The notes under the pieces are model-generated. The model made no database searches. It was given only the letters and a program-made list of their open reading frames with translations, and was not told the DNA's origin. A stretch of 64,000 bases of DNA from Epithemia pelagica. Its lineage: Eukaryota; Protista; Bacillariophyta. The stretch is from contig OX337240.1 of the NCBI GenBank assembly GCA_946965045.2, forward strand, positions 434,001-498,000. Reading direction: 5' to 3'. This document shows, piece by piece, positions 30,631 through 59,153 of the stretch; positions within the stretch are counted from its first letter, which is position 1, and each line of letters begins with the position of its first letter. Made by a program: the position numbers and the translations under genes.

Positions 30631-30844
30631 TGTTGAAACACAACTCCGGTCGTACCGTATAAGTAACCACTAGAGATGATCTCGTGTTATTTTAAAAAGA
30701 ATGAGCCTCCTCTTGGCTCATGTGTTTGTTTCGCCTCGATCTTGTGTCTATGACTCTGACGTGTCACCAAAGTCCATTGGGCCTTTTCCTCTTCAGTCGC
30801 ACTTTTCGTTTCCTTTGCCTTACTCGCATCCACTTGTCCTAACA
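30631..30844 (-). repeat. 3' LTR of copia A
   Basis: Direct repeat of 36309-36522; differences at 30635, 30660 and 30722. Confidence 0.97.
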
Positions 30845-33800
30845 CACTCCTTCGCGAGGAATGGTATTTACTAGTTCTCGGGATATTCATTAGGGCATCA
30901 CGAAAAGTATAGAAGATGGATCCTTGCAACGGCTTCGTGTGAAAGTCAGCGATCATTTCTTCAGTAGGGCAATATTCAATGCGTAAGTCTTTCTTGTCAA
31001 CACGATCCTTGATATAGAAATATCTGATGTTGATATGTTTTGTTCGTTTGCTGCTTGACGCACGTCCATTTTTCTCGAGCAAGATGGTACTCTTGTTATC
31101 TTGATACAAGATCACGTCCTTTATTGGATAGCCTTGGGCCTCCATAAATTGCTTACTCCACATGATCAATGGAAGTCCATCGTGGACCCCAATTAGTTCG
31201 CTTTCAGTTGAACTTCTGGCAACTAATTTTTGCTTGCTTGACATGTTCAGAGCGGCCCCTTGTCCCATTGACATGCCTGCTCCAGTATGTCCTCGCATAT
31301 TTGGATGAATTGCGTATGACGCATCAATCCACCATTTGACAATGCCACTCCCATCACAATTGAGGCGTAACAGGAGGTCTTTTGTCGACTGCAGGTATTT
31401 CATTAGTCGGGAGAGTTTCCTCCAGTCTTCTTCAGTCGGCTCAGCAACTCGAGTACTCAAGAAAGCCAGAGTTGCTCTCAAATCAGGTCGTGCCCGTTGG
31501 GCCAAATACATGAGCTGCATGGTGAGACTATGGAAGTAGTCGGCTTGGTCTTGTTTCAGTTTTGGGGACTCTTCTGTCACCATGAAGAGATAATTAGCTG
31601 CTGGTGTCAAGGCTTTGCCATGGAATTCCTTTGGCGCCTCCTCAATCAATCCTTGGATATATAATTGCATATCGACCATAAGGGTACCGGGCTCACTAAA
31701 GTCCAACCACATTCCCAGATAATCATGACGCTTGCCACGTGAAATGGACAGTTCACCAAGGGTGGCAAAAGTGTTGTTCAAATCCTCAATGATTTGCGTT
31801 ACTACGGCAGGATCTTTGTGAGAGATCTTAAGATCGTCCACATGCCAGGTAAGAGTACATTGATGGCCGTTGATTGTTTTGTTTGCCACACAAGAATCGT
31901 ATGGATTAATCTCGAAGCCCCAGCTTTTCACAACACTTGTGAGCTTCTCCCAAAATAGTCTTGCTGCTCTGAGTGTACCGTATAGAGCTCGTAGTAATTC
32001 CACATATATAACTTTTTCTCCACGTTCATAAACCACAAATGGTTCGTAGCTTTTGTCAATTTCGATCAAGAGGTCGACCATCAGTCCCGTTATACGCATA
32101 TAGACGTCCTTGTCCATGATTACTTGCATAAATGCACCTGGGATGTCAACTACTGCCACCTCTCGCTTCTCCATCGCGTCAACTTTTGCCGTGATAAATA
32201 CCGCCTCGGTTGATACTGTTGGTGAGACTGTGTCTTCCTTTGCAATATGACCCCGCTGCTTTCTACCGTCTGCACAACCACGACCTTTGATCTTCCCATT
32301 CCTTTTTCTTTTTAGGAACATCAAGTATCCTAAGGCTTGGCGTATTTGTTCTTTCGTTAGTTGGCTTTTGTGAATTGCTCGAATCACGTCTCTGTCATGA
32401 AGTTGTAGAACTTCTTTCTTGACTGCCGAGACTCCCAGATCTCCAAACATCCTCACTCCTTGTTTCATACCCATCTGTGGAGTTTCGTTGGTAGCGCTCG
32501 TCACATAGATATCATGGTCATATCTATGCGCGTAGCTACGTTCTCTATTTGTACGTAGATTGTATCCTCGTTCCGATGGGTCTCTATCGCCACTTGGTGC
32601 TGCAGTGGGTTCTGTTCTGGGTTCCAGGGCCGGCTCAGCTTGGTTCTCTACTAACATGTTGTCTGCCACGGCTTGATCAACAAAATATTCTATATTTTGT
32701 CCGTCCTGTTGGTCAATCTCAGTTGCCAATACAGGATGTTCATTGAATTCTCCTTCGTGATACTGCTCCACTCCTGGATTTTCAGCTGGAGCATTGATTG
32801 GACCATCGAAAGGTTCTTCTTCTGCAGCTGGAGCATTGATCGGACCATCGAAGGGTTCTCCTTCTACTGATGGTTGGTCGAATACTTGATCATCGTTTTC
32901 CACATCCGCCACTCCTTGATCCCCCACTCCTTGATTTTCCTCCATCTCCTCCATTGGATCACCTACTCCTTCCTCTTCTACCTCTTCATCCACTTCTTCT
33001 AGCTCACCGTCAATATACTCTTCATCATACCGAAGATCAATATCTTGCTCTTCTTCGTCAACAATGAATTCCTCATCGTTTGATTCATCATCATCATCAA
33101 ATTCGAGGGCTACAATTCGGTTGTCACGATTGCCAAATGCCAAATTTGGGTACCGATCTTGCGCATTGGTTAAGTCATACACGCGTTTTTCGATGCCTTC
33201 AGGCATTGGCACAATTGTTGCATGATTCCTGTTGATGATTCGGCCAGTGACTAGGCTCATGAAGTAGTATCCTCCCTGGCGGTTCCCTGTAGGGCGAAGG
33301 GTAATTGCTCCCACTGTTCTTGGTCCCATGTTGTTTGAATGCTGCTCGTGGGTTTGGACGTACTGACCAAATTCAAATTTGCAGTGACGATTAAAGTCAA
33401 TCATTTCCCCAGTTACGAGAGTTCTAGGGCTGAGCGTGTTCGAAAGTCCTTGGGATGCTGGAAAAGCGTTCAGCCAATAACAAGCATACTTTGCCAGTTC
33501 AATCACCATAATTCTTGGGACATAGCGAAATGGGAGTGTGTTATATACACAACGCATTCGTTCCTTGAGCGTTCGTATGTATCGCTCCACCTCACCAACA
33601 TGTTCTTCTCTTGAAGTTGGGTTGAGCTTGATCCCAACGTTGTTGAGTGCTGCATTGATCTCTGTCGTATCAAAGGCTCCATCAGCTAAGAGAACACGTG
33701 GTCTCAGATCTCCTCGTCGATATATTGACGCTACCTGTTTGATTGCCGTAATGACAGACTGATCTGTAACTGACGGTAGGGTATGGACTGTTCCGAACTT

Positions 33801-35666
33801 GATATTCCGAGAGATGGTGACAAGGAAGCCCACACCATTAACATGCATTACATCCATGCTGAGAACAACATCTTTTTGTTTGTCCGGGATGGGGACGTCA
33901 ACAAGTTCTTGGAATTCCACTTTGTGTGGGCGTCTTCGCGTTGTTTTTCCTTTTAGAATCCCTATGTCGGGTCCAAAGATTTTCATTGCTAACTTGACAT
34001 CATGACTCGTGAATGGGCAATTCGGAAGTAAATTTGAGTCCAGAATCTTACACAATTCACGGTCACTTGGTCGCCCTATTTTTGCTTGAAGCGACCGGAC
34101 TCCCTTAGCTCGAGCAACTTCATTCTCCGTATATCCTTGCTTATTCTTAGACACAGTGGTGACTAGGCATGATTTATTATCTGAATTACGCTCAGTATAA
34201 TACAAGCCCTCTCCATTTGATTTGAAGCAGTCCACCTGGTCTCCATTTTTGTCATATACTGTGAATGTATCGTTGTCGTCGTTGTACTTGATCTTGTGGG
34301 TTTTGGTAATAATATAGAATGAAAGGATGTTGACCCAGCCCCCTTGGTCAAACCAGACCGTTCCATAAGGGTCAAATTTGCCTTGAAGTGCTGTTGTCCT
34401 GGATCCCCCATGTCCCCGTATTGTTATCTGATGTGGGGCCTTGGATGGTTGATTTCGTAGAAGTTGTGGATTTGAAAAGACATGGACTGTTGCCTGGTTG
34501 TCGAGTAGGATCCAGGTCTTGGGTATGTTAGTCTGGGAAGTTGAAAGAGAAAGAACAGGTGAGGTTGGAATAACAGTTGATATATGGTCAGTATGATTCA
34601 AACCTTGTTGATTGGCACCACCTTGGGTGTCGCCTTGATTTGTAGTTGTTGTAGTGGTTGTTGAATCGGTGATGAATGCAACACCAGTACCTCCATTTGC
34701 ATTTGTCGTATCCTGTGGACTCTGTTGTTCTTGTTTTCTTGTCATTCTTGCATCCATGATTGCTCTAGCGTTGGCCAAGGTAGCTGGATAAATATTCTGT
34801 CCATCTAGGAAGCTGTTATGAAGATGAGCTTCATACTCCTTCTGCTGGCATGCTCGAATGAAGCGATTGGCGATCATTCTTTCTTGAGCTTCTTTTGTAT
34901 CCTCATCGATGGCTTTGCCAGCACGTCCATTTTTCTTGGCAATCTCTTCAACATAGGCCGCATCATAGAGGATAATGCCAAGTTCCTCTATCACTTTCAC
35001 CTTCGCCTTAAACACTTCATAGAACTGGTGGACACTCTGACCGGGATGCCGTTTCAGGTGATAAAAGTCAAACCGAATTCGATCCATTGCCATTCCAGTG
35101 TAAACTCTCCCAGGCTGGTAGGTGAAGGTAGTTGTTTTTATGAGCTGCAATAATTCAATCCCGTCTCTCTTGGTTTGAATTGATCCAAATTCTTTGTGAG
35201 CACGAAGTTTATCCTTGAGGAGCTCTGTTGACTGTCCCAATATAATACTATATAGAGCAGATCGAAAATCTGCCACTGCATCTCGCTTATCCATCATTCG
35301 CTTGTACTCCATCTTCCAGGCTTCGACTTGGATGTTGGTTGCAGTAGGTCCTGGCTCCGTTGGTGTAACTGGATCTTGTAGGTTGAGGTTCTCCACAGCG
35401 ACTTGAAAATCTTGGTTGTATTTCGAGAACTTGGTTCCGATGTAACCGATTAATAATTCTATGTTTCTTAAATATCTCTTCGCTTGGGAGTCTTCAGCGT
35501 AATCGAAAATGCACCCTTTGAGCAAGGGCTCTTGTCCTTCAAATTTACTATTTGTACCTCCTCGGTTGCGTCCGCCACGACCACGGCCTTGGTTTCCTCT
35601 ACCTCGTCCTTGTTGTCCTCGTCCTCTACCACCTGAGTCCATTTGGTCAGGTCTTGCTTCTGACAT
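30687..35666 (-). CDS. Gag-Pol polyprotein of copia A (1659 aa, intact)
   Basis: RGG-rich N-terminus; gag helices; protease WILLDNQAT; integrase SMDVMHV..LADGAF..VERYIRTLKE; RT ADGRKQR, VDIPGAF, LYGTLRAA, WHVDD; RNase H WWIDASY, SSTESE, YQDNKS, ADFHTKP. Confidence 0.97.
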   Translation of the reverse strand: MSEARPDQMDSGGRGRGQQGRGRGNQGRGRGGRNRGGTNSKFEGQEPLLKGCIFDYAEDSQAKRYLRNIELLIGYIGTKFSKYNQDFQVAVENLNLQDPVTPTEPGPTATNIQVEAWKMEYKRMMDKRDAVADFRSALYSIILGQSTELLKDKLRAHKEFGSIQTKRDGIELLQLIKTTTFTYQPGRVYTGMAMDRIRFDFYHLKRHPGQSVHQFYEVFKAKVKVIEELGIILYDAAYVEEIAKKNGRAGKAIDEDTKEAQERMIANRFIRACQQKEYEAHLHNSFLDGQNIYPATLANARAIMDARMTRKQEQQSPQDTTNANGGTGVAFITDSTTTTTTTNQGDTQGGANQQGLNHTDHISTVIPTSPVLSLSTSQTNIPKTWILLDNQATVHVFSNPQLLRNQPSKAPHQITIRGHGGSRTTALQGKFDPYGTVWFDQGGWVNILSFYIITKTHKIKYNDDNDTFTVYDKNGDQVDCFKSNGEGLYYTERNSDNKSCLVTTVSKNKQGYTENEVARAKGVRSLQAKIGRPSDRELCKILDSNLLPNCPFTSHDVKLAMKIFGPDIGILKGKTTRRRPHKVEFQELVDVPIPDKQKDVVLSMDVMHVNGVGFLVTISRNIKFGTVHTLPSVTDQSVITAIKQVASIYRRGDLRPRVLLADGAFDTTEINAALNNVGIKLNPTSREEHVGEVERYIRTLKERMRCVYNTLPFRYVPRIMVIELAKYACYWLNAFPASQGLSNTLSPRTLVTGEMIDFNRHCKFEFGQYVQTHEQHSNNMGPRTVGAITLRPTGNRQGGYYFMSLVTGRIINRNHATIVPMPEGIEKRVYDLTNAQDRYPNLAFGNRDNRIVALEFDDDDESNDEEFIVDEEEQDIDLRYDEEYIDGELEEVDEEVEEEGVGDPMEEMEENQGVGDQGVADVENDDQVFDQPSVEGEPFDGPINAPAAEEEPFDGPINAPAENPGVEQYHEGEFNEHPVLATEIDQQDGQNIEYFVDQAVADNMLVENQAEPALEPRTEPTAAPSGDRDPSERGYNLRTNRERSYAHRYDHDIYVTSATNETPQMGMKQGVRMFGDLGVSAVKKEVLQLHDRDVIRAIHKSQLTKEQIRQALGYLMFLKRKRNGKIKGRGCADGRKQRGHIAKEDTVSPTVSTEAVFITAKVDAMEKREVAVVDIPGAFMQVIMDKDVYMRITGLMVDLLIEIDKSYEPFVVYERGEKVIYVELLRALYGTLRAARLFWEKLTSVVKSWGFEINPYDSCVANKTINGHQCTLTWHVDDLKISHKDPAVVTQIIEDLNNTFATLGELSISRGKRHDYLGMWLDFSEPGTLMVDMQLYIQGLIEEAPKEFHGKALTPAANYLFMVTEESPKLKQDQADYFHSLTMQLMYLAQRARPDLRATLAFLSTRVAEPTEEDWRKLSRLMKYLQSTKDLLLRLNCDGSGIVKWWIDASYAIHPNMRGHTGAGMSMGQGAALNMSSKQKLVARSSTESELIGVHDGLPLIMWSKQFMEAQGYPIKDVILYQDNKSTILLEKNGRASSSKRTKHINIRYFYIKDRVDKKDLRIEYCPTEEMIADFHTKPLQGSIFYTFRDALMNIPRTSKYHSSRRSVLGQVDASKAKETKSATEEEKAQWTLVTRQSHRHKIEAKQTHEPRGGSFFLK

Positions 35667-35668
35667 GC

Positions 35669-36271
35669 TTATGATTCTCGAATGAGTTTCACGTTGTTGA
35701 GTTGTCTTTGATGTTCTTCGAACTTATTTGTGATCTTGTTCCAAATGCGGACCCAAACTTGCTCGCCTGACTTTGTGTATCTTACTACAGTCCCTTGAAG
35801 ATTCGAAATCCCCCGAGCGTGTTGTGCCAACTTGACAGGTGTGAGGACTGAGACTTTCGAGTGAACTTGAATCACGTCTGCTACTTCTTGTTCTTCTGTG
35901 TCTTCAACTTCAATTGCTGCTGCTTCAGGTAGTAGTTCACCTCGTTCTGCTTGTCCCAAAATATGTTCTTCTTCTTCAAGTGCTGTTCTGTATACTGCTC
36001 CTGAGTCGGCTTCAAACTGGTTTCTTGCTTCACGAAGCGCTTGTCTATACCGCGTATTCGAAGTAGCACGTTCCTCTTGATAGCGCTGTTCTAACTGGGC
36101 TTTATCAGCCCAGTACCGGCGGTCCACCGCACGAAGACGGTCTTCGTGGGCTTGTTCCAGCTGGCCGGTCTTGCGCTTTTCTGTTCGCTGGAGGCGTTTA
36201 AAGGCAGTTATCAATCTTGAGATTGGACCATCCGCGGGACCTTCAGAACACGGGCCTTCACTATTGGACAT
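35669..36271 (-). CDS. Extra upstream ORF of copia A (200 aa; coiled coil plus small beta-barrel-like domain)
   Basis: Lies between the PBS position and gag-pol; its stop is 2 nt before the gag-pol ATG; homologous to ORF 58142-58846. Confidence 0.8.
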   Translation of the reverse strand: MSNSEGPCSEGPADGPISRLITAFKRLQRTEKRKTGQLEQAHEDRLRAVDRRYWADKAQLEQRYQEERATSNTRYRQALREARNQFEADSGAVYRTALEEEEHILGQAERGELLPEAAAIEVEDTEEQEVADVIQVHSKVSVLTPVKLAQHARGISNLQGTVVRYTKSGEQVWVRIWNKITNKFEEHQRQLNNVKLIRES

Positions 36272-36308
36272 TCAGTGTAAGCTGAATGATTGTTTTCTTT
36301 TTAAAATA

Positions 36309-36522
36309 TGTTAAAACACAACTCCGGTCGTACCGTACAAGTAACCACTAGAGATGATCTCGTGTTATTTTAAAAAGAATGAGCCTCCTCTTGGCTCATT
36401 TGTTTGTTTCGCCTCGATCTTGTGTCTATGACTCTGACGTGTCACCAAAGTCCATTGGGCCTTTTCCTCTTCAGTCGCACTTTTCGTTTCCTTTGCCTTA
36501 CTCGCATCCACTTGTCCTAACA
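36309..36522 (-). repeat. 5' LTR of copia A
   Basis: TG...CA, 214 bp. Confidence 0.97.
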
Positions 36523-50327: not shown

Positions 50328-50655
50328 CCAGACCCCAAGCCCCAAAGTTTCGTTGCACAAAAAAAGAGAAAAGACCCCAGCAAAAGATCTCGCCACTCGC
50401 CACCACCTGGTCTCACTCTCACCAGGGACACCCGGCATTTTGGTTCCCCCAGGATGACTTTACCTAAACTCCTTTTGGGTAGCTAGGGCTGATCGCTAAT
50501 CTTGCGAGGGCTAGCTATTTTATTTTATGCACAATAGGGTTCGGGTCAAAGACACGTGTTCAAGACCAAACGAATTGTTAATTAGTTGTTTTTTGTGTCA
50601 CATCTGAGTCTTGTATTACGACGATCGCTAAAGCTTTCTCGTTTTGAGTCGTGTT

Positions 50656-50809
50656 GGTTTCGGGTTGGTCCCGTTTTTAACGTCTGGTTTCGAGTTGGTG
50701 TCCACTGGTTTCGAGTTGGTGTCCACTGGTTTCGGGTTGGTGTCCACTGGTTTCGAGTTGGTTTCCAAGTTGGTTTCGAGTTGGTTTCGAGTTGGTTTCG
50801 ACCCCTCTA
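50656..50809. repeat. GGTTTCGAGTT(GGTGTCCACT) array ending in a hAT-like terminus
   Basis: 11- and 21-bp units. It ends CGACCCCTCTA (reverse complement TAGAGGGGTCG, a TAGAG start like the hAT MITE at 60121). No partner end with matching TSD was found. Confidence 0.6.
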
Positions 50810-51061
50810 CAAACTGCGAACGCAATAATCAACCATGTCGCGCAACAGACGGATCGTTTTGACCCAACAACTATGGAAACAACAACAACGAGGAAGCAAC
50901 AAACAACGACCTCCCGAACAACAACAACAAGCACCATGGATGCAACAAGGTGATACGCATGTCTCGGCTATGGCCTTCTCGTCTTCCTACCCTCCTACTG
51001 CTGGTCCTATCGAACGACAGTGAACGGGAAATCGAATCGCGGCAATCAGACGGCGACAACG

Positions 51062-51301
<240 letters not shown>

Positions 51302-51629
51302 TACGCAACAATCAATCGATAGCCTTGACGAGGGTGGTGGTGTATAGGGTTGAATCTCGACGGACAATCCTCGTCGAATGGGTCGATGGGAGGAGGCGGA
51401 TGGTCTCTGCTAGGTTCTCTTGTTTCACTTGCTCGACAATCTGATCGAGACGTTTCACGGCACCCATGGCTTTGGCTACGGTATCGGCTGTGAGTATTCG
51501 AGCGTCGTTGTTGTCGTTTTGTGCCCGAAAGCACGTTTGGACAAACTCCATGGCATCGGCCACCGTCACATTGTCCGAACCGGAAGTTTGAAACCTCATC
51601 CCAGTCCGTACAAGAGGACAGGACATGGG

Positions 51630-52607
51630 AGGGAAGAATGGTGGTTTTGGATGGAGGAAGTGTCAAGGAAGCAGTAGTGGTGATGGCGACGACGTAGCGA
51701 CGACAAGGACTGTTGCAGCAACGACAACAACAGCAAGTGACTAGCGGCGACAACGACAACGACAGCAAGCGGCGACAACGGAACGACTGGACAGAAAATG
51801 GCTGTGCCCCAACAGCCCCAATGCGACAATCAACTACTGGCTACCACCAAACGAACAACAACAACTACAGCACTCGGAGACAACAACGACAACAGTCTGA
51901 TGCTGCGACAACACCAAACGCAACAACACCTTACTCAACAATCAACTCCCAGGGAAGAATGGTGGTTTTGGATGTAGGAAGCAGTAGTGGTGATGGAGAC
52001 GACGTTGCGACGACAAGGACTGTCGCAGCAACGACAACAACAGCAAGCGACTAGCGGCGACAACGACAAACCCAACGACGACAACGACAGCAAGTGGCGA
52101 CAATGACTAGCGGCGACAAGGACAACGACTGGACGGAAAATGGCTGTGCCCCAACAGCCCCAATGCGACAATCAACTACTGGCTACCGCCAAACGAACAA
52201 CAACAACTACCAACAACGACAACAGTCTGATGCTGCGACAACACCAAACGCAACAACACCTTACTCAACAATCAACTCCCAGGGAAGAATGGGGTTTTGG
52301 ATGTAGGAAGCAGTAGTGGTGATGGAGACGACGTTGCGACGACAAGGACTGTCGCAGCAACGACAACAACAGCAAGCGACTAGCGGCGACAACGACAAAC
52401 CCAACGACGACAACGACAGCAAGCGGCGACAATGACTAGCGGCGACAAGGACAACAACTGGACGGAAAATGGCTGTGTCCCAACAGCCCCAATGCGACAA
52501 TCAACTACTGGCTACCACCAAACGAACAACAACTACAGCACTCGTAGAAAACAACGACAACAATCTGACACCAAACGCAACAACACCTTACTCAACAATC
52601 AACTCCC
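51630..52607. repeat. Three tandem copies of a ~325-bp unit
   Basis: Units start AGGGAAGAATGG at 51630, 51951 and 52281; each contains GAAAATGGCTGTG(C/T)CCCAACAGCCCCAATGCGACAATCAACTACTGGCTAC and ends CAACAATCAACTCCC. Confidence 0.93.
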
Positions 52608-52967
52608 CCGTTGGAACCTTTGTCGCTGGGTGCAATGTCAACGAGAGCCCCTTTGAAACCTTGATGGACGGTGAAACAACAACCAACGAAGACAAATGGA
52701 TCGATGCAGGATGGTGAAGATGAACGAAACGATTGCCTACGACCTACGGCATATACAAGCATGTACAAAGCTAGGTAGATGTTCTATAATAGTAGCTGTT
52801 CATATTCAAAGAGGTTGATTGTTGTGCTAGCGATGGTGTGGTTGGAGGTGGAGCTCGTATGTAGGTTTCGAGTTGGTTTCGAGTTGGTTTCGAGTTGGTG
52901 TCCACTTGTTTCCACTTGTTTCGAGTTGGTGTCCAGTGGTTTCGAGTTGGTGTCCAGTGGTTTCGAC

Positions 52968-53180
52968 TGTTGAAACCTGTAACGAACCGTGCTGTAAAGG
53001 CAACAATTCCTATAACAAATTACGTATTCTCCTTAGAATGAGCACTGTTGTTTGTTTCGTTGCTCTCCTGTCCACGTCGTTTCACCTCAGTCCATTCGTC
53101 ATCATTTGCAGATGGATCTTCGCCTTGCTCAGTCGCTGTTTTCGTTTGTTCTGCGACTCCTCGCGGGACTTCCTTCAACA
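52968..53180 (-). repeat. 3' LTR of copia B
   Basis: Identical to 58905-59117 on base-by-base comparison. Confidence 0.97.
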
Positions 53181-56100
53181 CACTCCTTCGTGACGAATGG
53201 TATTCACTATGAGGAGCGATATTCATAATGAGGTCCCGCAGTTGATAGAACAAGCGACCCTGCAGCGGCTTGGTAAAAAAATCTGCAATCATTTGTTCAG
53301 TTGGGCAAAATTCAACCCGCAACTCTTTCTTGTTGATTCGATCGGTAACAAAGAAATAGCGGACATCAATATGTTTGGTTCTTTTCGAGCTTGAGAGACG
53401 CCCATTTTTGGCTAGGAGGATGCTGCTTTGGTTGTCCTGGTGGAGTACAACATCCTTCACAGCAATCCCCTGCGCTTCCATGAAATTGCGGGTCCATAAC
53501 AGTGATGGCATCACATCATGGATCCCTATCAGTTCACATTCGGTGGAGCTTCGTGCCACCAGTTTTTGTTTTGCCGAAAAGCCGATGACAGCTCCTTTAC
53601 CGAGAGTCATGAACCCACCGGTATGACCCTTTGTGTTGGGATGGACTGCGTATGACGCGTCCACCCACCATTTCACTATCCACTCGGGTTTTCCTTCAAG
53701 ACGCAAGACAAGGTTCATTGTGGTTTGTAGATATTTCAGAACGCGGCCCAATTTCCTGTTATCATCTTCGTCTGGTTTAGAGACTCGCGTGGAAAGGAAG
53801 GATATTGCTGTTCGGATGTCCGGCCTCCCACGGTGAGCCAAGTATGCCAATTGCATAGTGATACTATGAAACCGATCCGCATCATTCTCGCTCAATTTTG
53901 TTGCATGCTCATTGACATGGTACAGATGATTCGCTGCTGGTGTTTGTGCTCTGCCTTTGAATGACGAAGGCATGCCGTCAAGGATGGTCTTGATATACGG
54001 GCGCATGTCTACTTGCAATACTCCATCCTCTGAATAATCGAGGAACATGCCCAGGTAGTCGTGTCGCTTGCCTCGCGACACTGAGATATCACCCAAACTA
54101 CCAAACTCTGCCTGTAGGTCCGCCACAAATGCTTCGACGACTTTCTGATCAACATGTGAGATCTTGAGGTCGTCGATGTGCCATGTTACTGTGCATTGTT
54201 TGCCATTGATAACCTTGTTGGCAACGCATGAATCATATGGGTTGATAGTGTACCCCCAACTTTTTAGAACGCCGCTCAATTTGATCCAAAACAATCGGGC
54301 AGCTCGTAGTGTCCCGTAGAGTGCCTTGAGCATCTCTACGTAGATCACTGGTTTGTTGTGTTCATACACTAGGTATTTTGTGTACATATCTGGGTCGACT
54401 TCCAACAGCAATTCTGCCATGAGTCCCTCAATCCTCATGTGCACGTTAGGGTCCATATCCGAGTGCATGAATGCACCCGGAATGTCCGCTACGATCACAT
54501 GTCTACGTTCCACTGCATCCACAACCGCTGTGATGAAAACAGCCTCGGTGGCCACGGTTGGCGATGCGGCGTCTTCTTTGTCGATGAAATCACGTTGCTT
54601 TCGCCCATCGGCGCACCCGCGCCCCTTGATTTTCCCACAACGTTTTTGTTTTAGAAACATCAGATAATTCAGTGCTTTTTTGATTTGTTCCCATGAGAGG
54701 TCCGTCTTGTGTACCCCTCGCAGAACGCCGCGCTCGTGAAGCTGCCTAATCTCTTTTTTCACTGCTTCCCGCCCCTTGTCACCAAATAGTTTGATGCCCA
54801 TACGCATTGACATTTGGGGTGTGGCCAAGTTTGTTTCGGCCTCAATGAGATAGAGCACTCCGCGCAGCAAATATCCATCGTACCGTCCTGCTGGTAGTGT
54901 ATCGACTGATGCAAAGGTGTGCCCATACCTATGTGCATAGCTTCGCTCTCTATTTGGCCGTAGATCGTATCGATTTTCGTTGGTTGTTGTTGTTGTTGCT
55001 GTTGTCGATGAGCTTGATTCATCACTAGCATCAGGACCAAACACGATCTCCATTTCCTCATCGTCATTCTCGTGTGCGGTTGCATTTGATGCGTCATTCA
55101 GATCCTCCTCTGTTCCCATATCCACCTCGTCCAACATACCCCCGTCCTCTGCGACATGCTCTTCAACATAATCAGCATCGTCCTCCTCCTCCACATCAAC
55201 TCCATTGACGCCAACTTCGTTTATAACCACTCCTTGGTTTTCCACTCCTTGGTTTTCCACTCCTTGATTTCTCGGTGGGACAAGGATATCCATGAGTTGG
55301 TTTTCGTTTTGATTAAGTCCTAATTCGTAAAAAGGACCCGGTGGATTGTTCATATCATAGTGATTTGTGTCGTCCAATGGACCGTGGTTTGGGTCATCAT
55401 CAGCATCCAATTCGCCATCCACGTATGCGTCGTCATAGCGGAGGACATCATCGTCCTCGTCAGGAGGCTCATCATATACGCTTCCTTCGTCGTCGTATAA
55501 TGGATTGTCCTCTTCCATTGCCAGAATGCGATTGTCCCGATTACCAAATGCCAGCCCTGGCTGCATTTGTTGTGCAGCCGCTAACTGAGCGACACGCTGA
55601 ATGACTTCATTTGGCATAGGGAGGCGTGTTGCGTGGTTTCGTGTGATGATTCTTCCGCTCTCCAGACTCATAAAGTAGTAGCTACCTTGACGGTTGCCGG
55701 TCGGCCGCAAGGCCAGGGCACCAATTGTCCGCGCTTCCATATTGTTGGAGTGCTGTTCATGACATTGAACGTACTCCCCAAACTCGAAGCGACAATGGCG
55801 GTGATAGTCCACGGTTTCTCCGGTGACAAGTTCTCTTGGACTTCTTGTGGTTGACAGCTGGTTGTTCTGGTTGGGAAGTCCATTCAGCCAGAACGTCGCA
55901 AATTTCGCCAGTTCAATCAACATGACCTTTGGCAGGGCTTCGAATGGTAGAGTGGTATAGACACTCCGAATTCGTTCCTTGATCGTGCGAATGTGGCGCT
56001 CTATGTCACCGACATGCTCGTCTCGAGCTGTTGTATTAAGTTTTATTCCAAGCTCCCCTGTTCCCGCTTCCATGCTGTCACTCGCAAAGGCGCCGTCAGC

Positions 56101-58182
56101 TAGGAGAAACCGAGGGCGCAGACCCCCTCGTCGAAATACAGCGATGGTCTTCTTGATGGACCGAAGTAGGGTTCCTTCTTCTTTGTCTGCGATTGCGTCC
56201 ATGGTGGAGAATCGAAATACGCGAGATGTTGTGGCGAGAAAAGACACATCATTGATATGCATTACGTCCATGGCAATGGTGACGTCTTTATGTTTTTCTT
56301 GAATGGGTGGTGGTATTGTGTCCGTTGTGTCCACCTTGGGTGGTCGTCTCCTGGTAGTCTTCCCTTTCAGGGAACCGAGGTCTTGTCCATAGATATGCTC
56401 TGCCCGCCTCACATCATCACTTGTATAAGGGGCGTTGGGTAGGAGCTTATGATTCAGAATATAGATAAGGTCTCTAGTTGACGGTCGGCCAATTTTGGCT
56501 TGTAGTGCCCGTACCTCTCTAGCTCTACGAATCTCAGATTCAGTATAAAGCGCTTCGTTGTTATTAACCGTGGTTAAGAAGCTACCATGTATCGAAGAGA
56601 GATTCATATAGAAGAGGCCTTCAGGACTTTGCACAAACTTGTGCTTCAAGCGCCCCGTGGCTGGGTCAAGTAGTTGAAATTGGTTGCCTTCATGGCTGTC
56701 GTAGGTAATGCGGTATCTGTTTTGAGCGGTGTGGAAAGATAAAATGTTGGCAGGCCCTTTTGGGTCATACCATACTAAGCCATATCCTGGCAATATTGCT
56801 TGTTGGTTCAGGATGCGTTCTCCGGCATGGCTGCTGATGGTGATTGGTGTCGTTGCTTGATGGATGTTGTGTAGAATGCTTGCATTGTGGATGATATCCA
56901 CTGTGGATTGATTGTCGAGCAGAATCCAGTCAGGGGATATGTTAGACTGTAAGGCAGAAAAAGAACAATGTTGAGAAGATGCGTTTTGGTTCAACATGGA
57001 TTGGTGGTAAACTGTACCGTTTGAGTTGTCTCTGTTTCTATTGGTGGAGTCGGTTCCCTGAGCTGACTGTCGCCCACTTTGCGATTGACTCTGACCCGTA
57101 GTGGTCATTGTGGATCCTGTTAACGTGGATGCATCGTCGCCTTGCGTACTGGCGTTCTCGCGCGTGTGATAGGCCACACCTGTGGCGTTGTTCTCGTTGC
57201 TTTGTGTCTGGTGGCGACTATGCGTCTGCATTCTGTTATCTATGATGGCACGCGCATCGGCCAGTGTCTTTGGGTAACAGTTGCGTTTGTCCATGTCCAA
57301 GTAAGCGTTTTGTAGATGCGATTCATACTCGCGAGCGCCACATGTTCTGATAAAACGGATGGCCAGACACCTCTGTTGAGCTTCTTCTTCGTCAGCCGTT
57401 GTTGGTGACCCAGCGCGACCATTGTCAGCCGCTACTTGCTCCAGTAGATCCTTGTCGTATAACACCACGTCCAGTTCCTCCAGGACTTGCGCTTTTGCGC
57501 GAAACAACTCGTAGTAGTTGTGCAAACTTTGGTTTTTACCCCTGCGCATCGTGTAGAACTCTTCCTTGAGCTTGTCACGACCGACGAGAGGATAAATGCG
57601 CCCGGAATCGTAGGTAAAAGTAGTTTGTTTGATCAATTTCAACAACGCTATACCGTCGCGCTTCTTCCGAATGTCATCATATTGCGTCTTCGCCTGTAGT
57701 TTGTCTTTCATCAACTGGGTACACTGCCCCAGGATGAGACTAAACATGGCGGCGCGAAAATTCTGATACTCCATCACCTGCTCAGCTCGCATTTTATACT
57801 TCATCTTCCACTCTTCTACGGCAAGGGTGTCTTTGTCATCTTTCGGCATTTCTACCTGGTCGGGTTCATCCAGTGACAATTCCTCCACTGACTGTTGGAA
57901 CTCCAGATTATATCGGTTGAATGTTGAGCCAATGTAACCGACCAGATACTCTACATTGCGCAAATACCGTTTGGACTGCGGGTCTTCGGAGTAGTCGAAG
58001 ATGCAGTCTTTTAATGTAGGTTCCTGTCCTTGAAACTTGTTTGAGTTTCCTTGTTGTCCTCTGCCTCCACGTCCTCGACCACGACCACCACGTCCTGGTC
58101 CGCTTCTTCCTCCGCGTCCGGTCATGCCGCCGCTTGACGACTCAGCTTGATCGGGCCGTGGTCCTTGCGGGGGTGTACTCAT
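53020..58182 (-). CDS. Gag-Pol polyprotein of copia B (1720 aa, intact)
   Basis: RGG N-terminus; WILLDNQST; AMDVMHI..LADGAF..IERHIRTIKE; ADGRKQR, ADIPGAF, WHIDD; WWVDASY, HQDNQS, ADFFTKP. Confidence 0.97.
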   Translation of the reverse strand: MSTPPQGPRPDQAESSSGGMTGRGGRSGPGRGGRGRGRGGRGQQGNSNKFQGQEPTLKDCIFDYSEDPQSKRYLRNVEYLVGYIGSTFNRYNLEFQQSVEELSLDEPDQVEMPKDDKDTLAVEEWKMKYKMRAEQVMEYQNFRAAMFSLILGQCTQLMKDKLQAKTQYDDIRKKRDGIALLKLIKQTTFTYDSGRIYPLVGRDKLKEEFYTMRRGKNQSLHNYYELFRAKAQVLEELDVVLYDKDLLEQVAADNGRAGSPTTADEEEAQQRCLAIRFIRTCGAREYESHLQNAYLDMDKRNCYPKTLADARAIIDNRMQTHSRHQTQSNENNATGVAYHTRENASTQGDDASTLTGSTMTTTGQSQSQSGRQSAQGTDSTNRNRDNSNGTVYHQSMLNQNASSQHCSFSALQSNISPDWILLDNQSTVDIIHNASILHNIHQATTPITISSHAGERILNQQAILPGYGLVWYDPKGPANILSFHTAQNRYRITYDSHEGNQFQLLDPATGRLKHKFVQSPEGLFYMNLSSIHGSFLTTVNNNEALYTESEIRRAREVRALQAKIGRPSTRDLIYILNHKLLPNAPYTSDDVRRAEHIYGQDLGSLKGKTTRRRPPKVDTTDTIPPPIQEKHKDVTIAMDVMHINDVSFLATTSRVFRFSTMDAIADKEEGTLLRSIKKTIAVFRRGGLRPRFLLADGAFASDSMEAGTGELGIKLNTTARDEHVGDIERHIRTIKERIRSVYTTLPFEALPKVMLIELAKFATFWLNGLPNQNNQLSTTRSPRELVTGETVDYHRHCRFEFGEYVQCHEQHSNNMEARTIGALALRPTGNRQGSYYFMSLESGRIITRNHATRLPMPNEVIQRVAQLAAAQQMQPGLAFGNRDNRILAMEEDNPLYDDEGSVYDEPPDEDDDVLRYDDAYVDGELDADDDPNHGPLDDTNHYDMNNPPGPFYELGLNQNENQLMDILVPPRNQGVENQGVENQGVVINEVGVNGVDVEEEDDADYVEEHVAEDGGMLDEVDMGTEEDLNDASNATAHENDDEEMEIVFGPDASDESSSSTTATTTTTNENRYDLRPNRERSYAHRYGHTFASVDTLPAGRYDGYLLRGVLYLIEAETNLATPQMSMRMGIKLFGDKGREAVKKEIRQLHERGVLRGVHKTDLSWEQIKKALNYLMFLKQKRCGKIKGRGCADGRKQRDFIDKEDAASPTVATEAVFITAVVDAVERRHVIVADIPGAFMHSDMDPNVHMRIEGLMAELLLEVDPDMYTKYLVYEHNKPVIYVEMLKALYGTLRAARLFWIKLSGVLKSWGYTINPYDSCVANKVINGKQCTVTWHIDDLKISHVDQKVVEAFVADLQAEFGSLGDISVSRGKRHDYLGMFLDYSEDGVLQVDMRPYIKTILDGMPSSFKGRAQTPAANHLYHVNEHATKLSENDADRFHSITMQLAYLAHRGRPDIRTAISFLSTRVSKPDEDDNRKLGRVLKYLQTTMNLVLRLEGKPEWIVKWWVDASYAVHPNTKGHTGGFMTLGKGAVIGFSAKQKLVARSSTECELIGIHDVMPSLLWTRNFMEAQGIAVKDVVLHQDNQSSILLAKNGRLSSSKRTKHIDVRYFFVTDRINKKELRVEFCPTEQMIADFFTKPLQGRLFYQLRDLIMNIAPHSEYHSSRRSVLKEVPRGVAEQTKTATEQGEDPSANDDEWTEVKRRGQESNETNNSAHSKENT

Positions 58183-58846
58183 GGTGTTCTTGACGCGGTG
58201 CTAGGTTTTGTCGTTGTCTACGGTGTTGCTCTTGGTCGTGGGTGAAGGGATTGTATACCTGGATGGTGTATACAGTTCTTCGACCGTTTGCCTTTCCTCG
58301 CGACAACACTATTCCTTTTAGATGAGATCGTTTTTGCACTCGAGCCAACTTGAGGGGATTCAGAACCCAGACAGCACTGCCGATAGCCAGAACCGGTGGA
58401 ATGGATGATGCGTTGGCTGGCAAAACAGGGATATTGTAAATAATCTCCACTCGTCCGTTCTTGTCTCGTACCACTTCTTCGGCGTCGAGAAAACCGGATG
58501 AGTCCCGCGACAACTCCTCGTCTCCACTGGTGTTGTCCGGCACGACGGCGGCTGCCACTGCAGTTCGATCCTCCTCGGTTTGTACGTCCACAATTAACGC
58601 GCGACGTCTTGTCTGAAAATCGGATACGATCCTTTCTCGTGATGCTGTCAGCACCGTGTTATCGTGTTCAACCTCCGCCTGATGTTGTTGTTCCAACTCG
58701 GCTCGGTGTTCACGAAAGGTCGCCTCGCGCAACTGCACGTTGTGCTGGTGCCGACGATGCACCTCTGCAAGGCGTTCTTGTTCTTCAATGGAAAGGGCGG
58801 TGAGTTGGTTCAACAACGTAGTCAAACGACTGGGATTCTCCGACAT
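58142..58846 (-). CDS. Extra upstream ORF of copia B (234 aa)
   Basis: Overlaps the gag-pol start by 41 nt in another frame; homologous to 35669-36271. Confidence 0.8.
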   Translation of the reverse strand: MSENPSRLTTLLNQLTALSIEEQERLAEVHRRHQHNVQLREATFREHRAELEQQHQAEVEHDNTVLTASRERIVSDFQTRRRALIVDVQTEEDRTAVAAAVVPDNTSGDEELSRDSSGFLDAEEVVRDKNGRVEIIYNIPVLPANASSIPPVLAIGSAVWVLNPLKLARVQKRSHLKGIVLSRGKANGRRTVYTIQVYNPFTHDQEQHRRQRQNLAPRQEHHEYTPARTTARSS

Positions 58847-58904
58847 GCAGTGTACTTCACCTCAAAATGAGAATCAAGAGGTAGTTATTTTTCTAAGGAG
58901 AATA

Positions 58905-59117
58905 TGTTGAAACCTGTAACGAACCGTGCTGTAAAGGCAACAATTCCTATAACAAATTACGTATTCTCCTTAGAATGAGCACTGTTGTTTGTTTCGTTGC
59001 TCTCCTGTCCACGTCGTTTCACCTCAGTCCATTCGTCATCATTTGCAGATGGATCTTCGCCTTGCTCAGTCGCTGTTTTCGTTTGTTCTGCGACTCCTCG
59101 CGGGACTTCCTTCAACA
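58905..59117 (-). repeat. 5' LTR of copia B
   Basis: TG...CA, 213 bp. Confidence 0.97.
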
Positions 59118-59153
59118 TCGACTAGGTTTCGACGTGGTTTCGACTCTGGTTTA

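Follow-up and report, generated by a model that had tools for sequence, protein, structure and literature searches.

The 64-kb window, by which we mean the whole stretch of DNA analyzed, holds two LTR elements, A and B, both on the minus strand (Table 1). Element B belongs to the Ty1/copia LTR retrotransposons; its host is a diatom, and the copy is young and intact. It combines a copia-type reverse transcriptase (RT) of the RVT_2 type with TG...CA LTRs, a 5-bp TSD and a polypurine tract (PPT) before the 3′ LTR, all of which are Ty1/copia criteria. A Tf1/sushi element would be expected to have a gypsy-type RT and the domain order PR-RT-RH-IN, whereas B has RVT_2 with integrase motifs before the RT. 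The match of the ORF2 RT to RVT_2 (PF07727) was the only significant Pfam match in B, and none was obtained for ORF1. Integrase, RNase H and protease were not detected in ORF2 by Pfam, also with the threshold relaxed to E = 1, and alignment A1 gave no match in a search of PDB profiles. By eye, these three domains are visible in alignment A1 as short motifs only, with the integrase-like motifs lying N-terminal of the RT. Given that the domains are recognizable only as motifs, the clade must be very divergent.

Several further properties of the coding region and its surroundings were observed. ORF1 and ORF2 of B overlap by 41 nt in different frames (58142-58182), in a frameshift-like arrangement; in A one in-frame stop (35666-35671) lies between the ORFs, and in several relatives from other assemblies a single ORF runs through. 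The pol ORF of both elements crosses the PPT, U3, TCA and the 3′-LTR copy of the 14-mer described below (53020-53038 in B; 30687-30701 in A) and stops 0-5 nt from the 3′ end of that copy, the distance in B being 2 nt. The junction of the PPT with the LTR start, AGGAGTGTGTTG, encodes the invariant pol residues RSVL (columns R1666-L1669). Tandem repeats surround element B (window positions 50643-52998), with 21-nt units TGGTTTCGAGTTGGTGTCCAC, a 9-nt array at 50990-51358 and 329-nt repeats at 51666-52625.

Table 1. Features of elements B and A in the 64-kb window, and one related copy elsewhere in the genome. Positions are those of the window unless a contig is named; assignments to RNA start, U3, R, U5 and primer are predicted.
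Feature	Position	Strand	Remarks
Element B	52968-59117	-	LTRs 213 nt, 100% identical to each other
TSD TCGAC, right copy	59118-59122		same 5 nt flank both LTRs
5′ LTR, element B	58905-59117	-	213 nt, TGTTG...CAACA; identical to 52968-53180
Inferred U3, element B	58976-59117	-	142 nt; 3′ end is initiator-like GCTCA 58980-58976
14-nt putative self-primer TTCTAAGGAGAATA	58962-58975	-	predicted RNA 5′ end, start of R
Remaining R + U5	58905-58961	-	57-nt fold-back loop
Hairpin motif GTTGCCTTTACAGCAC	58941-58926	-	within 57-nt loop; alignment A2 columns 40-53
PBS TATTCTCCTTAGAA	58891-58904	-	abuts LTR end; exact complement of putative self-primer
ORF1, upstream ORF of element B	58142-58846	-	234 aa
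ORF2 polyprotein	53020-58182	-	1720 aa, copia-type RT (RVT_2)
Polypurine tract GAAGGAGTG	53181-53189	-	adjoins 3′ LTR; same in A and B
3′ LTR, element B	52968-53180	-	second 14-mer copy at 53025-53038
TSD TCGAC, left copy	52963-52967
Element A	30631-36522	-	LTRs 214 nt, 99% identical
Element A fold-back	36295-36380	-	primer TTCTTTTTAAAATA 36379-36366, 57-nt loop, PBS 36308-36295
L073/L074 copy	C13:769285-776221

The sense strand of B reads GCTCA, then TTCTAAGGAGAATA, 57 nt closing with the LTR end GTTTCAACA (..CAACA), and then the PBS TATTCTCCTTAGAA; in plus-strand terms, 58891-58904 is TTCTAAGGAGAATA, and 58962-58975 is TATTCTCCTTAGAA followed by TGAGC. The perfect 14-bp pairing of 58904-58891 with 58975-58962 that had been claimed from the sequence alone was confirmed by this direct reading. 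The helix ends at 14 bp, where an A stands opposite an A on its outer side. The 57-nt loop and the preceding GCTCA, also part of that claim, were found as described and are the same in A, for which the corresponding order on the sense strand is GCTCA, TTCTTTTTAAAATA, 57 nt, the LTR end GTTTTAACA and the PBS TATTTTAAAAAGAA. In both elements the PBS lies at offset 0 from the LTR end. These two fold-backs are the only perfect inverted repeats of at least 14 nt with a loop of 30-170 nt in the 64-kb window, and 20 shuffled windows yielded a single repeat of at least 12 nt in total (∼0.05 expected per window). Predicted folding of the B segment gave -32.6 kcal/mol (z = -5.8), and the A segment likewise folds as predicted.

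Comparison of the two 14-mers bore out the statement that they differ at 5 of 14 positions: the differences lie at positions 5, 6, 7, 8 and 10, and each change is mirrored in the partner strand. The accompanying description of the two LTRs as not obviously alignable holds only in part; they are weakly alignable, with ∼50% identity and with conserved blocks that consist of the termini, AAACGAAAA, GCGACTGA and the hairpin motif. Unlike the loop around it, this small hairpin within the loop, GTTGCYTKTACRGCAC (58926-58941), is nearly invariant across families with 63-100% RT identity; its candidate roles are those of a U5-IR-like stem, a polyA signal and a packaging signal.

Relatives of B were sought in the genome assembly (60.5 Mb, 23 contigs), where at least 122 matches to the B RT were found at 40-100% identity. 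The 5′ and 3′ junctions were sampled across the spread of these matches in sequence pieces of 0.4-1.3 kb, and LTR ends were set by comparing both LTRs. Three elements (L037, L042 and L051) fall outside the count, the pieces having missed the junction, and two more (L049 and L053) were positive as L077 and L078. The 5′ LTR end could be defined in 40 elements, with RT identities to B of 41 to 100%, and every one of them has the fold-back. The pairing is a perfect 14 bp in 38 of them and has one mismatch in the other 2 (L069 and L095). Twenty distinct 14-mers occur among the genome elements; 291/294 cells are Watson-Crick, and at least 2 pair types are present at 13 of the 14 positions. They share a duplex length of 14 bp and a PBS that begins directly at the LTR end (..CAACA), at offset 0. 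Of 45 genome elements, 43 have TCA ahead of the primer, and 39 have an A behind the PBS that ends the helix. Loop length varies from 46 to 103 nt. The “identical geometry” ascribed to A and B by the sequence-only reading accordingly stands for the 14 bp, for the offset of 0 and for the loop that these two elements share, but the 57-nt loop is no constant of the family.

In L069 (C6:171215-172215) an A in the primer faces a C in the PBS, leaving 13 of 14 positions paired, and the sister element L059 is fully paired; the mismatch either arose by mutation after insertion or represents an intermediate that has not been compensated. Elsewhere in the genome, a 443-nt unit is repeated in tandem at least four times directly 3′ of a copia element of 52% identity (C1:4037292-4039204). 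At many loci a 249-nt part of this unit is present again at a distance of 7.5-9 kb, a pattern suggestive of another repeat family.

The distribution of the B 14-mer itself was also determined. TCA followed by this 14-mer occurs 34 times in the genome, as 15 pairs and 4 lone copies, and the members of the pairs are 5.6-18 kb apart, most of them ∼5.9 kb, as expected of LTR pairs. The B 14-mer is confined to LTRs in this genome.

ENA, JGI, NCBI and Logan assemblies contain many proteins with 31-59% identity to the B polyprotein, the nearest named homologues being those of Mayamaea and Nitzschia. Eight intact elements from other assemblies, chosen by protein identity (L102-L106, L187-189, L190 and L191), were inspected. 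The sequence-only reading had set against its own proposal the case that most intact relatives lack the complementarity; the opposite was found, the signature being present in 8/8. The Logan contigs among them (L187-L191) stop short of the RNA 5′ end. A Mayamaea copy, L101, keeps the first 7 PBS bases only and appears to be internally deleted.

Among 80 metagenome contigs, 64 carry the signature, and the other 16 do not contain the 5′ part of the element. A scan independent of LTR positions scored 59 of the 80 as positive, and 5 further contigs were positive when the 3′-LTR primer or an LTR end of ..CAGCA was used. In these contigs (455 kb), 69 of the 71 sense-strand inverted repeats of at least 12 nt carry the signature; on the antisense strand of the same 455 kb it was found in none. 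Loops range from 38 to 152 nt, and TCA precedes the 14-mer in 45 of 69 cases. Complementarity after the LTR, for which the earlier reading had proposed a check in related diatom elements, was in all observed in 40/40 elements in the genome and in 72 elements elsewhere, and no testable counter-example was encountered among the relatives in the genome, the other assemblies or the metagenomes. The first bases of three metagenome contigs (L111, L114 and L115) fall within 5 nt of the predicted RNA start or cut site, and that of L115 is the one immediately following the 14-nt primer. These contig starts are possibly due to chance and are given no weight, most such contigs being circular k-mer-overlap artefacts.

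Pooling of the genome, the other assemblies and the metagenomes gave 70 distinct primer/PBS pairs, of which 62 are perfect. Watson-Crick pairs occupy 971 of 980 cells, and at least 3 pair types occur at each of the 14 positions, such that every position covaries. When primers were instead paired with non-cognate PBSs, a mean of 6.1 of 14 positions matched. RNAalifold analysis of 16 family representatives returned the 14-bp stem with double changes at 10 of 14 pairs and no broken pair, together with the small hairpin GTTGCYTKTACRGCAC of the loop; the covariation expected by the sequence-only reading is evident from both approaches. Its conclusion that A and B belong to a self-priming copia lineage is likewise supported by the 70 primer/PBS pairs, which come from this genome and from unrelated assemblies. 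As judged by their first letters rather than against the tRNA set of the genome, none of the 70 PBSs starts with TGG. The 64-kb window contains no tRNA gene.

The same reading took the covariation as a sign of selection for the duplex rather than for a fixed external tRNA. The 70 pairs do exclude a fixed host tRNA, but the changes need not have arisen as independent double mutations, as an element changed at three sites illustrates. In this copy, L073, both LTRs have an A at one and the same primer position and the PBS has a T, where its three sisters (L067, L057 and L071), at 97-98% identity, have G, G and C. Independent mutations would not be expected to change three sites together in a short time, but regeneration of the LTRs and the PBS from RNA and primer would. 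Templating, in addition to selection, thus probably underlies the covariation.

Taken as a whole, the clade very probably primes reverse transcription with its own RNA, in the manner of Tf1. In LTR retroelements the 3′ edge of the 5′ LTR is set by the 3′ end of the minus-strand primer, and in every case examined here the helix that forms with the element's own LTR has its first base pair at this edge. The partner differs by subfamily, and its copies in the genome are confined to pairs spaced as LTRs; host RNA, tRNA included, does not account for this pattern, whereas priming by the element's own RNA would. The following minimal model can be proposed. The first transcribed base would be the A of the initiator-like TCA in the 5′ LTR, or a base adjoining it; counted from the A, the 14-mer would occupy nt 2-15 of the RNA. 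These 14 nt would fold back over the R/U5 loop, of 57 nt in B, and pair with the 14 nt after the LTR. The element's putative RNase H would then cut the RNA after duplex nt 14 to leave a 3′-OH on the first PBS base, which RT would extend into U5; the LTR end would coincide with the start of the duplex because of this extension. After the strand transfers, plus-strand synthesis would copy the still-attached RNA primer. Since the primer would be copied in each cycle, the PBS would be rewritten, and primer and PBS would evolve in concert.

Transcription start, cleavage and primer copying are steps that we infer, and that the RNA start and the cut site lie exactly where proposed is somewhat probable. 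The initiator-like TCA is the one feature by which the putative RNA start was placed. The stramenopile initiator, which the TCA fits, is YCAYTYY/TCATTCT (PMC3599244), and TCATTCT is the commonest initiator of oomycetes, with transcription starting at the A. The motif is documented for oomycetes, and no documentation of it was found for diatoms. Public contigs that hold the element (four runs of unrecorded type, one study) are DNA-like and break at the LTR ends.

Among the alternatives to self-priming, the fold-back might be a structural leader that serves packaging, dimerization or translation control, with RT using some other primer. Such signals are common in the leader RNAs of retroelements, the loop closed by the stem is structured and contains a conserved small hairpin, and priming by the 14-mer is itself a prediction from sequence. 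A pure stem, however, needs neither a fixed 14 bp nor an exact offset. The LTR end, which is set by the primer 3′ end, is in all cases the point at which the duplex starts, and no other candidate PBS (TGG... or tRNA-like) adjoins the LTR. We regard a purely structural role as very unlikely. It is also conceivable that the primer acts in trans, as a 5′ fragment of a second RNA copy (a co-packaged genome or another transcript) that anneals to the PBS. Pairing in cis and in trans look the same in sequence data, and a loop of 38-152 nt with little conservation makes geometry seem unimportant; on the other hand, the predicted intramolecular structures are stable, and priming in trans would be a sub-variant of self-priming in which the origin of the primer is unchanged. 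This variant is judged very unlikely. Complementarity arising by chance, or through a host tRNA or small RNA that resembles the LTR, has in its favor only the a priori expectation of tRNA-Met or half-tRNA primers in copia and was rejected as having a negligible probability in view of the shuffled windows, the occurrence of the 14-mer in LTR-spaced pairs only and the existence of 70 primer/PBS pairs that differ from one another but fit their own LTRs.

Self-priming with the element's own RNA, the reading favored here, is proven for Tf1/Tf2 (gypsy), and the Tf1/sushi and Tcn1 groups have been proposed to use it as well. The Tf1 primer consists of the first 11 nt of the RNA, which anneal to the PBS and are severed from nt 12 by RNase H. 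As in Tf1/Tf2 and Tf1/sushi, the PBS of B directly follows the LTR and pairs with what is predicted to be the 5′ end of the element's transcript. With Tf1/Tf2 it further shares a structured R/U5 loop between primer and PBS and the expectation that primer sequence passes into the PBS; complementarity to tRNA is absent from Tf1/Tf2 and probably also from the B clade, none of whose 70 PBSs starts with TGG. The differences from Tf1, a Ty3/gypsy element of Schizosaccharomyces pombe, are the diatom host, the copia-type RT, the putative integrase before the RT and a helix of 14 rather than 11 bp; self-priming of the diatom clade is a prediction from sequence.

A self-priming copia lineage is not unprecedented, as one has been predicted for the plant TAR lineage of Ty1/copia, which includes Houba and Osr-1 (Neumann et al. 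2019, PMC6317226). TAR resembles the diatom clade in superfamily and in that its self-priming was predicted by the same kind of evidence, but its hosts are land plants, and an origin of self-priming in the diatom clade independent of TAR is plausible. In fungal GalEa copia elements, a “Conserved Hairpin Site” replaces the PBS, and complementarity to the LTR was sought and none found (PMC5445492). GalEa is thus similar to B as a copia element without a tRNA-type PBS and dissimilar in that the complementarity to the LTR is perfect in B. The copia CoDi groups of diatoms, such as Blackbeard, have been described with no mention of PBS, tRNA or priming (Maumus et al. 2009, PMC2806351). They are similar to B in host group, superfamily and element size, and B and the CoDi elements probably belong to the same radiation. 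A full-text search of the literature found no report of self-priming in diatoms. To our knowledge, no self-priming experiment exists for any copia element. The diatom clade would be a new lineage for a known mechanism, with a predicted helix of 14 rather than 11 bp.

Copia elements are the dominant transposon class of diatom genomes, and nitrogen limitation and aldehyde stress activate them. It is a possible but still tentative proposal that the entire diatom-centered copia radiation is independent of tRNA, that its 14-nt self-primer arose separately from those of Tf1/sushi and TAR and that its subfamilies carry barcodes. If this is true, rewriting of the PBS from the primer in each cycle would give each subfamily a private primer/PBS barcode, and such barcodes would limit cross-priming and help subfamilies to diverge. 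Independently of this proposal, sequence evidence of unusual strength, the 70 covarying primer/PBS pairs, points to a large clade of diatom copia elements, including those on marine and microbial-mat metagenome contigs, that has the solution of Tf1-type gypsy elements, for which alone self-priming is proven. For annotation, the order TCA, 14-mer, ..CAACA and then the reverse complement of the 14-mer is a simple diagnostic for elements that tRNA-based PBS finders would miss, and the elements that carry it form a natural data set for the co-evolution of primer and PBS. The model also predicts that stress-activated elements of this clade would be independent of the host tRNA supply.
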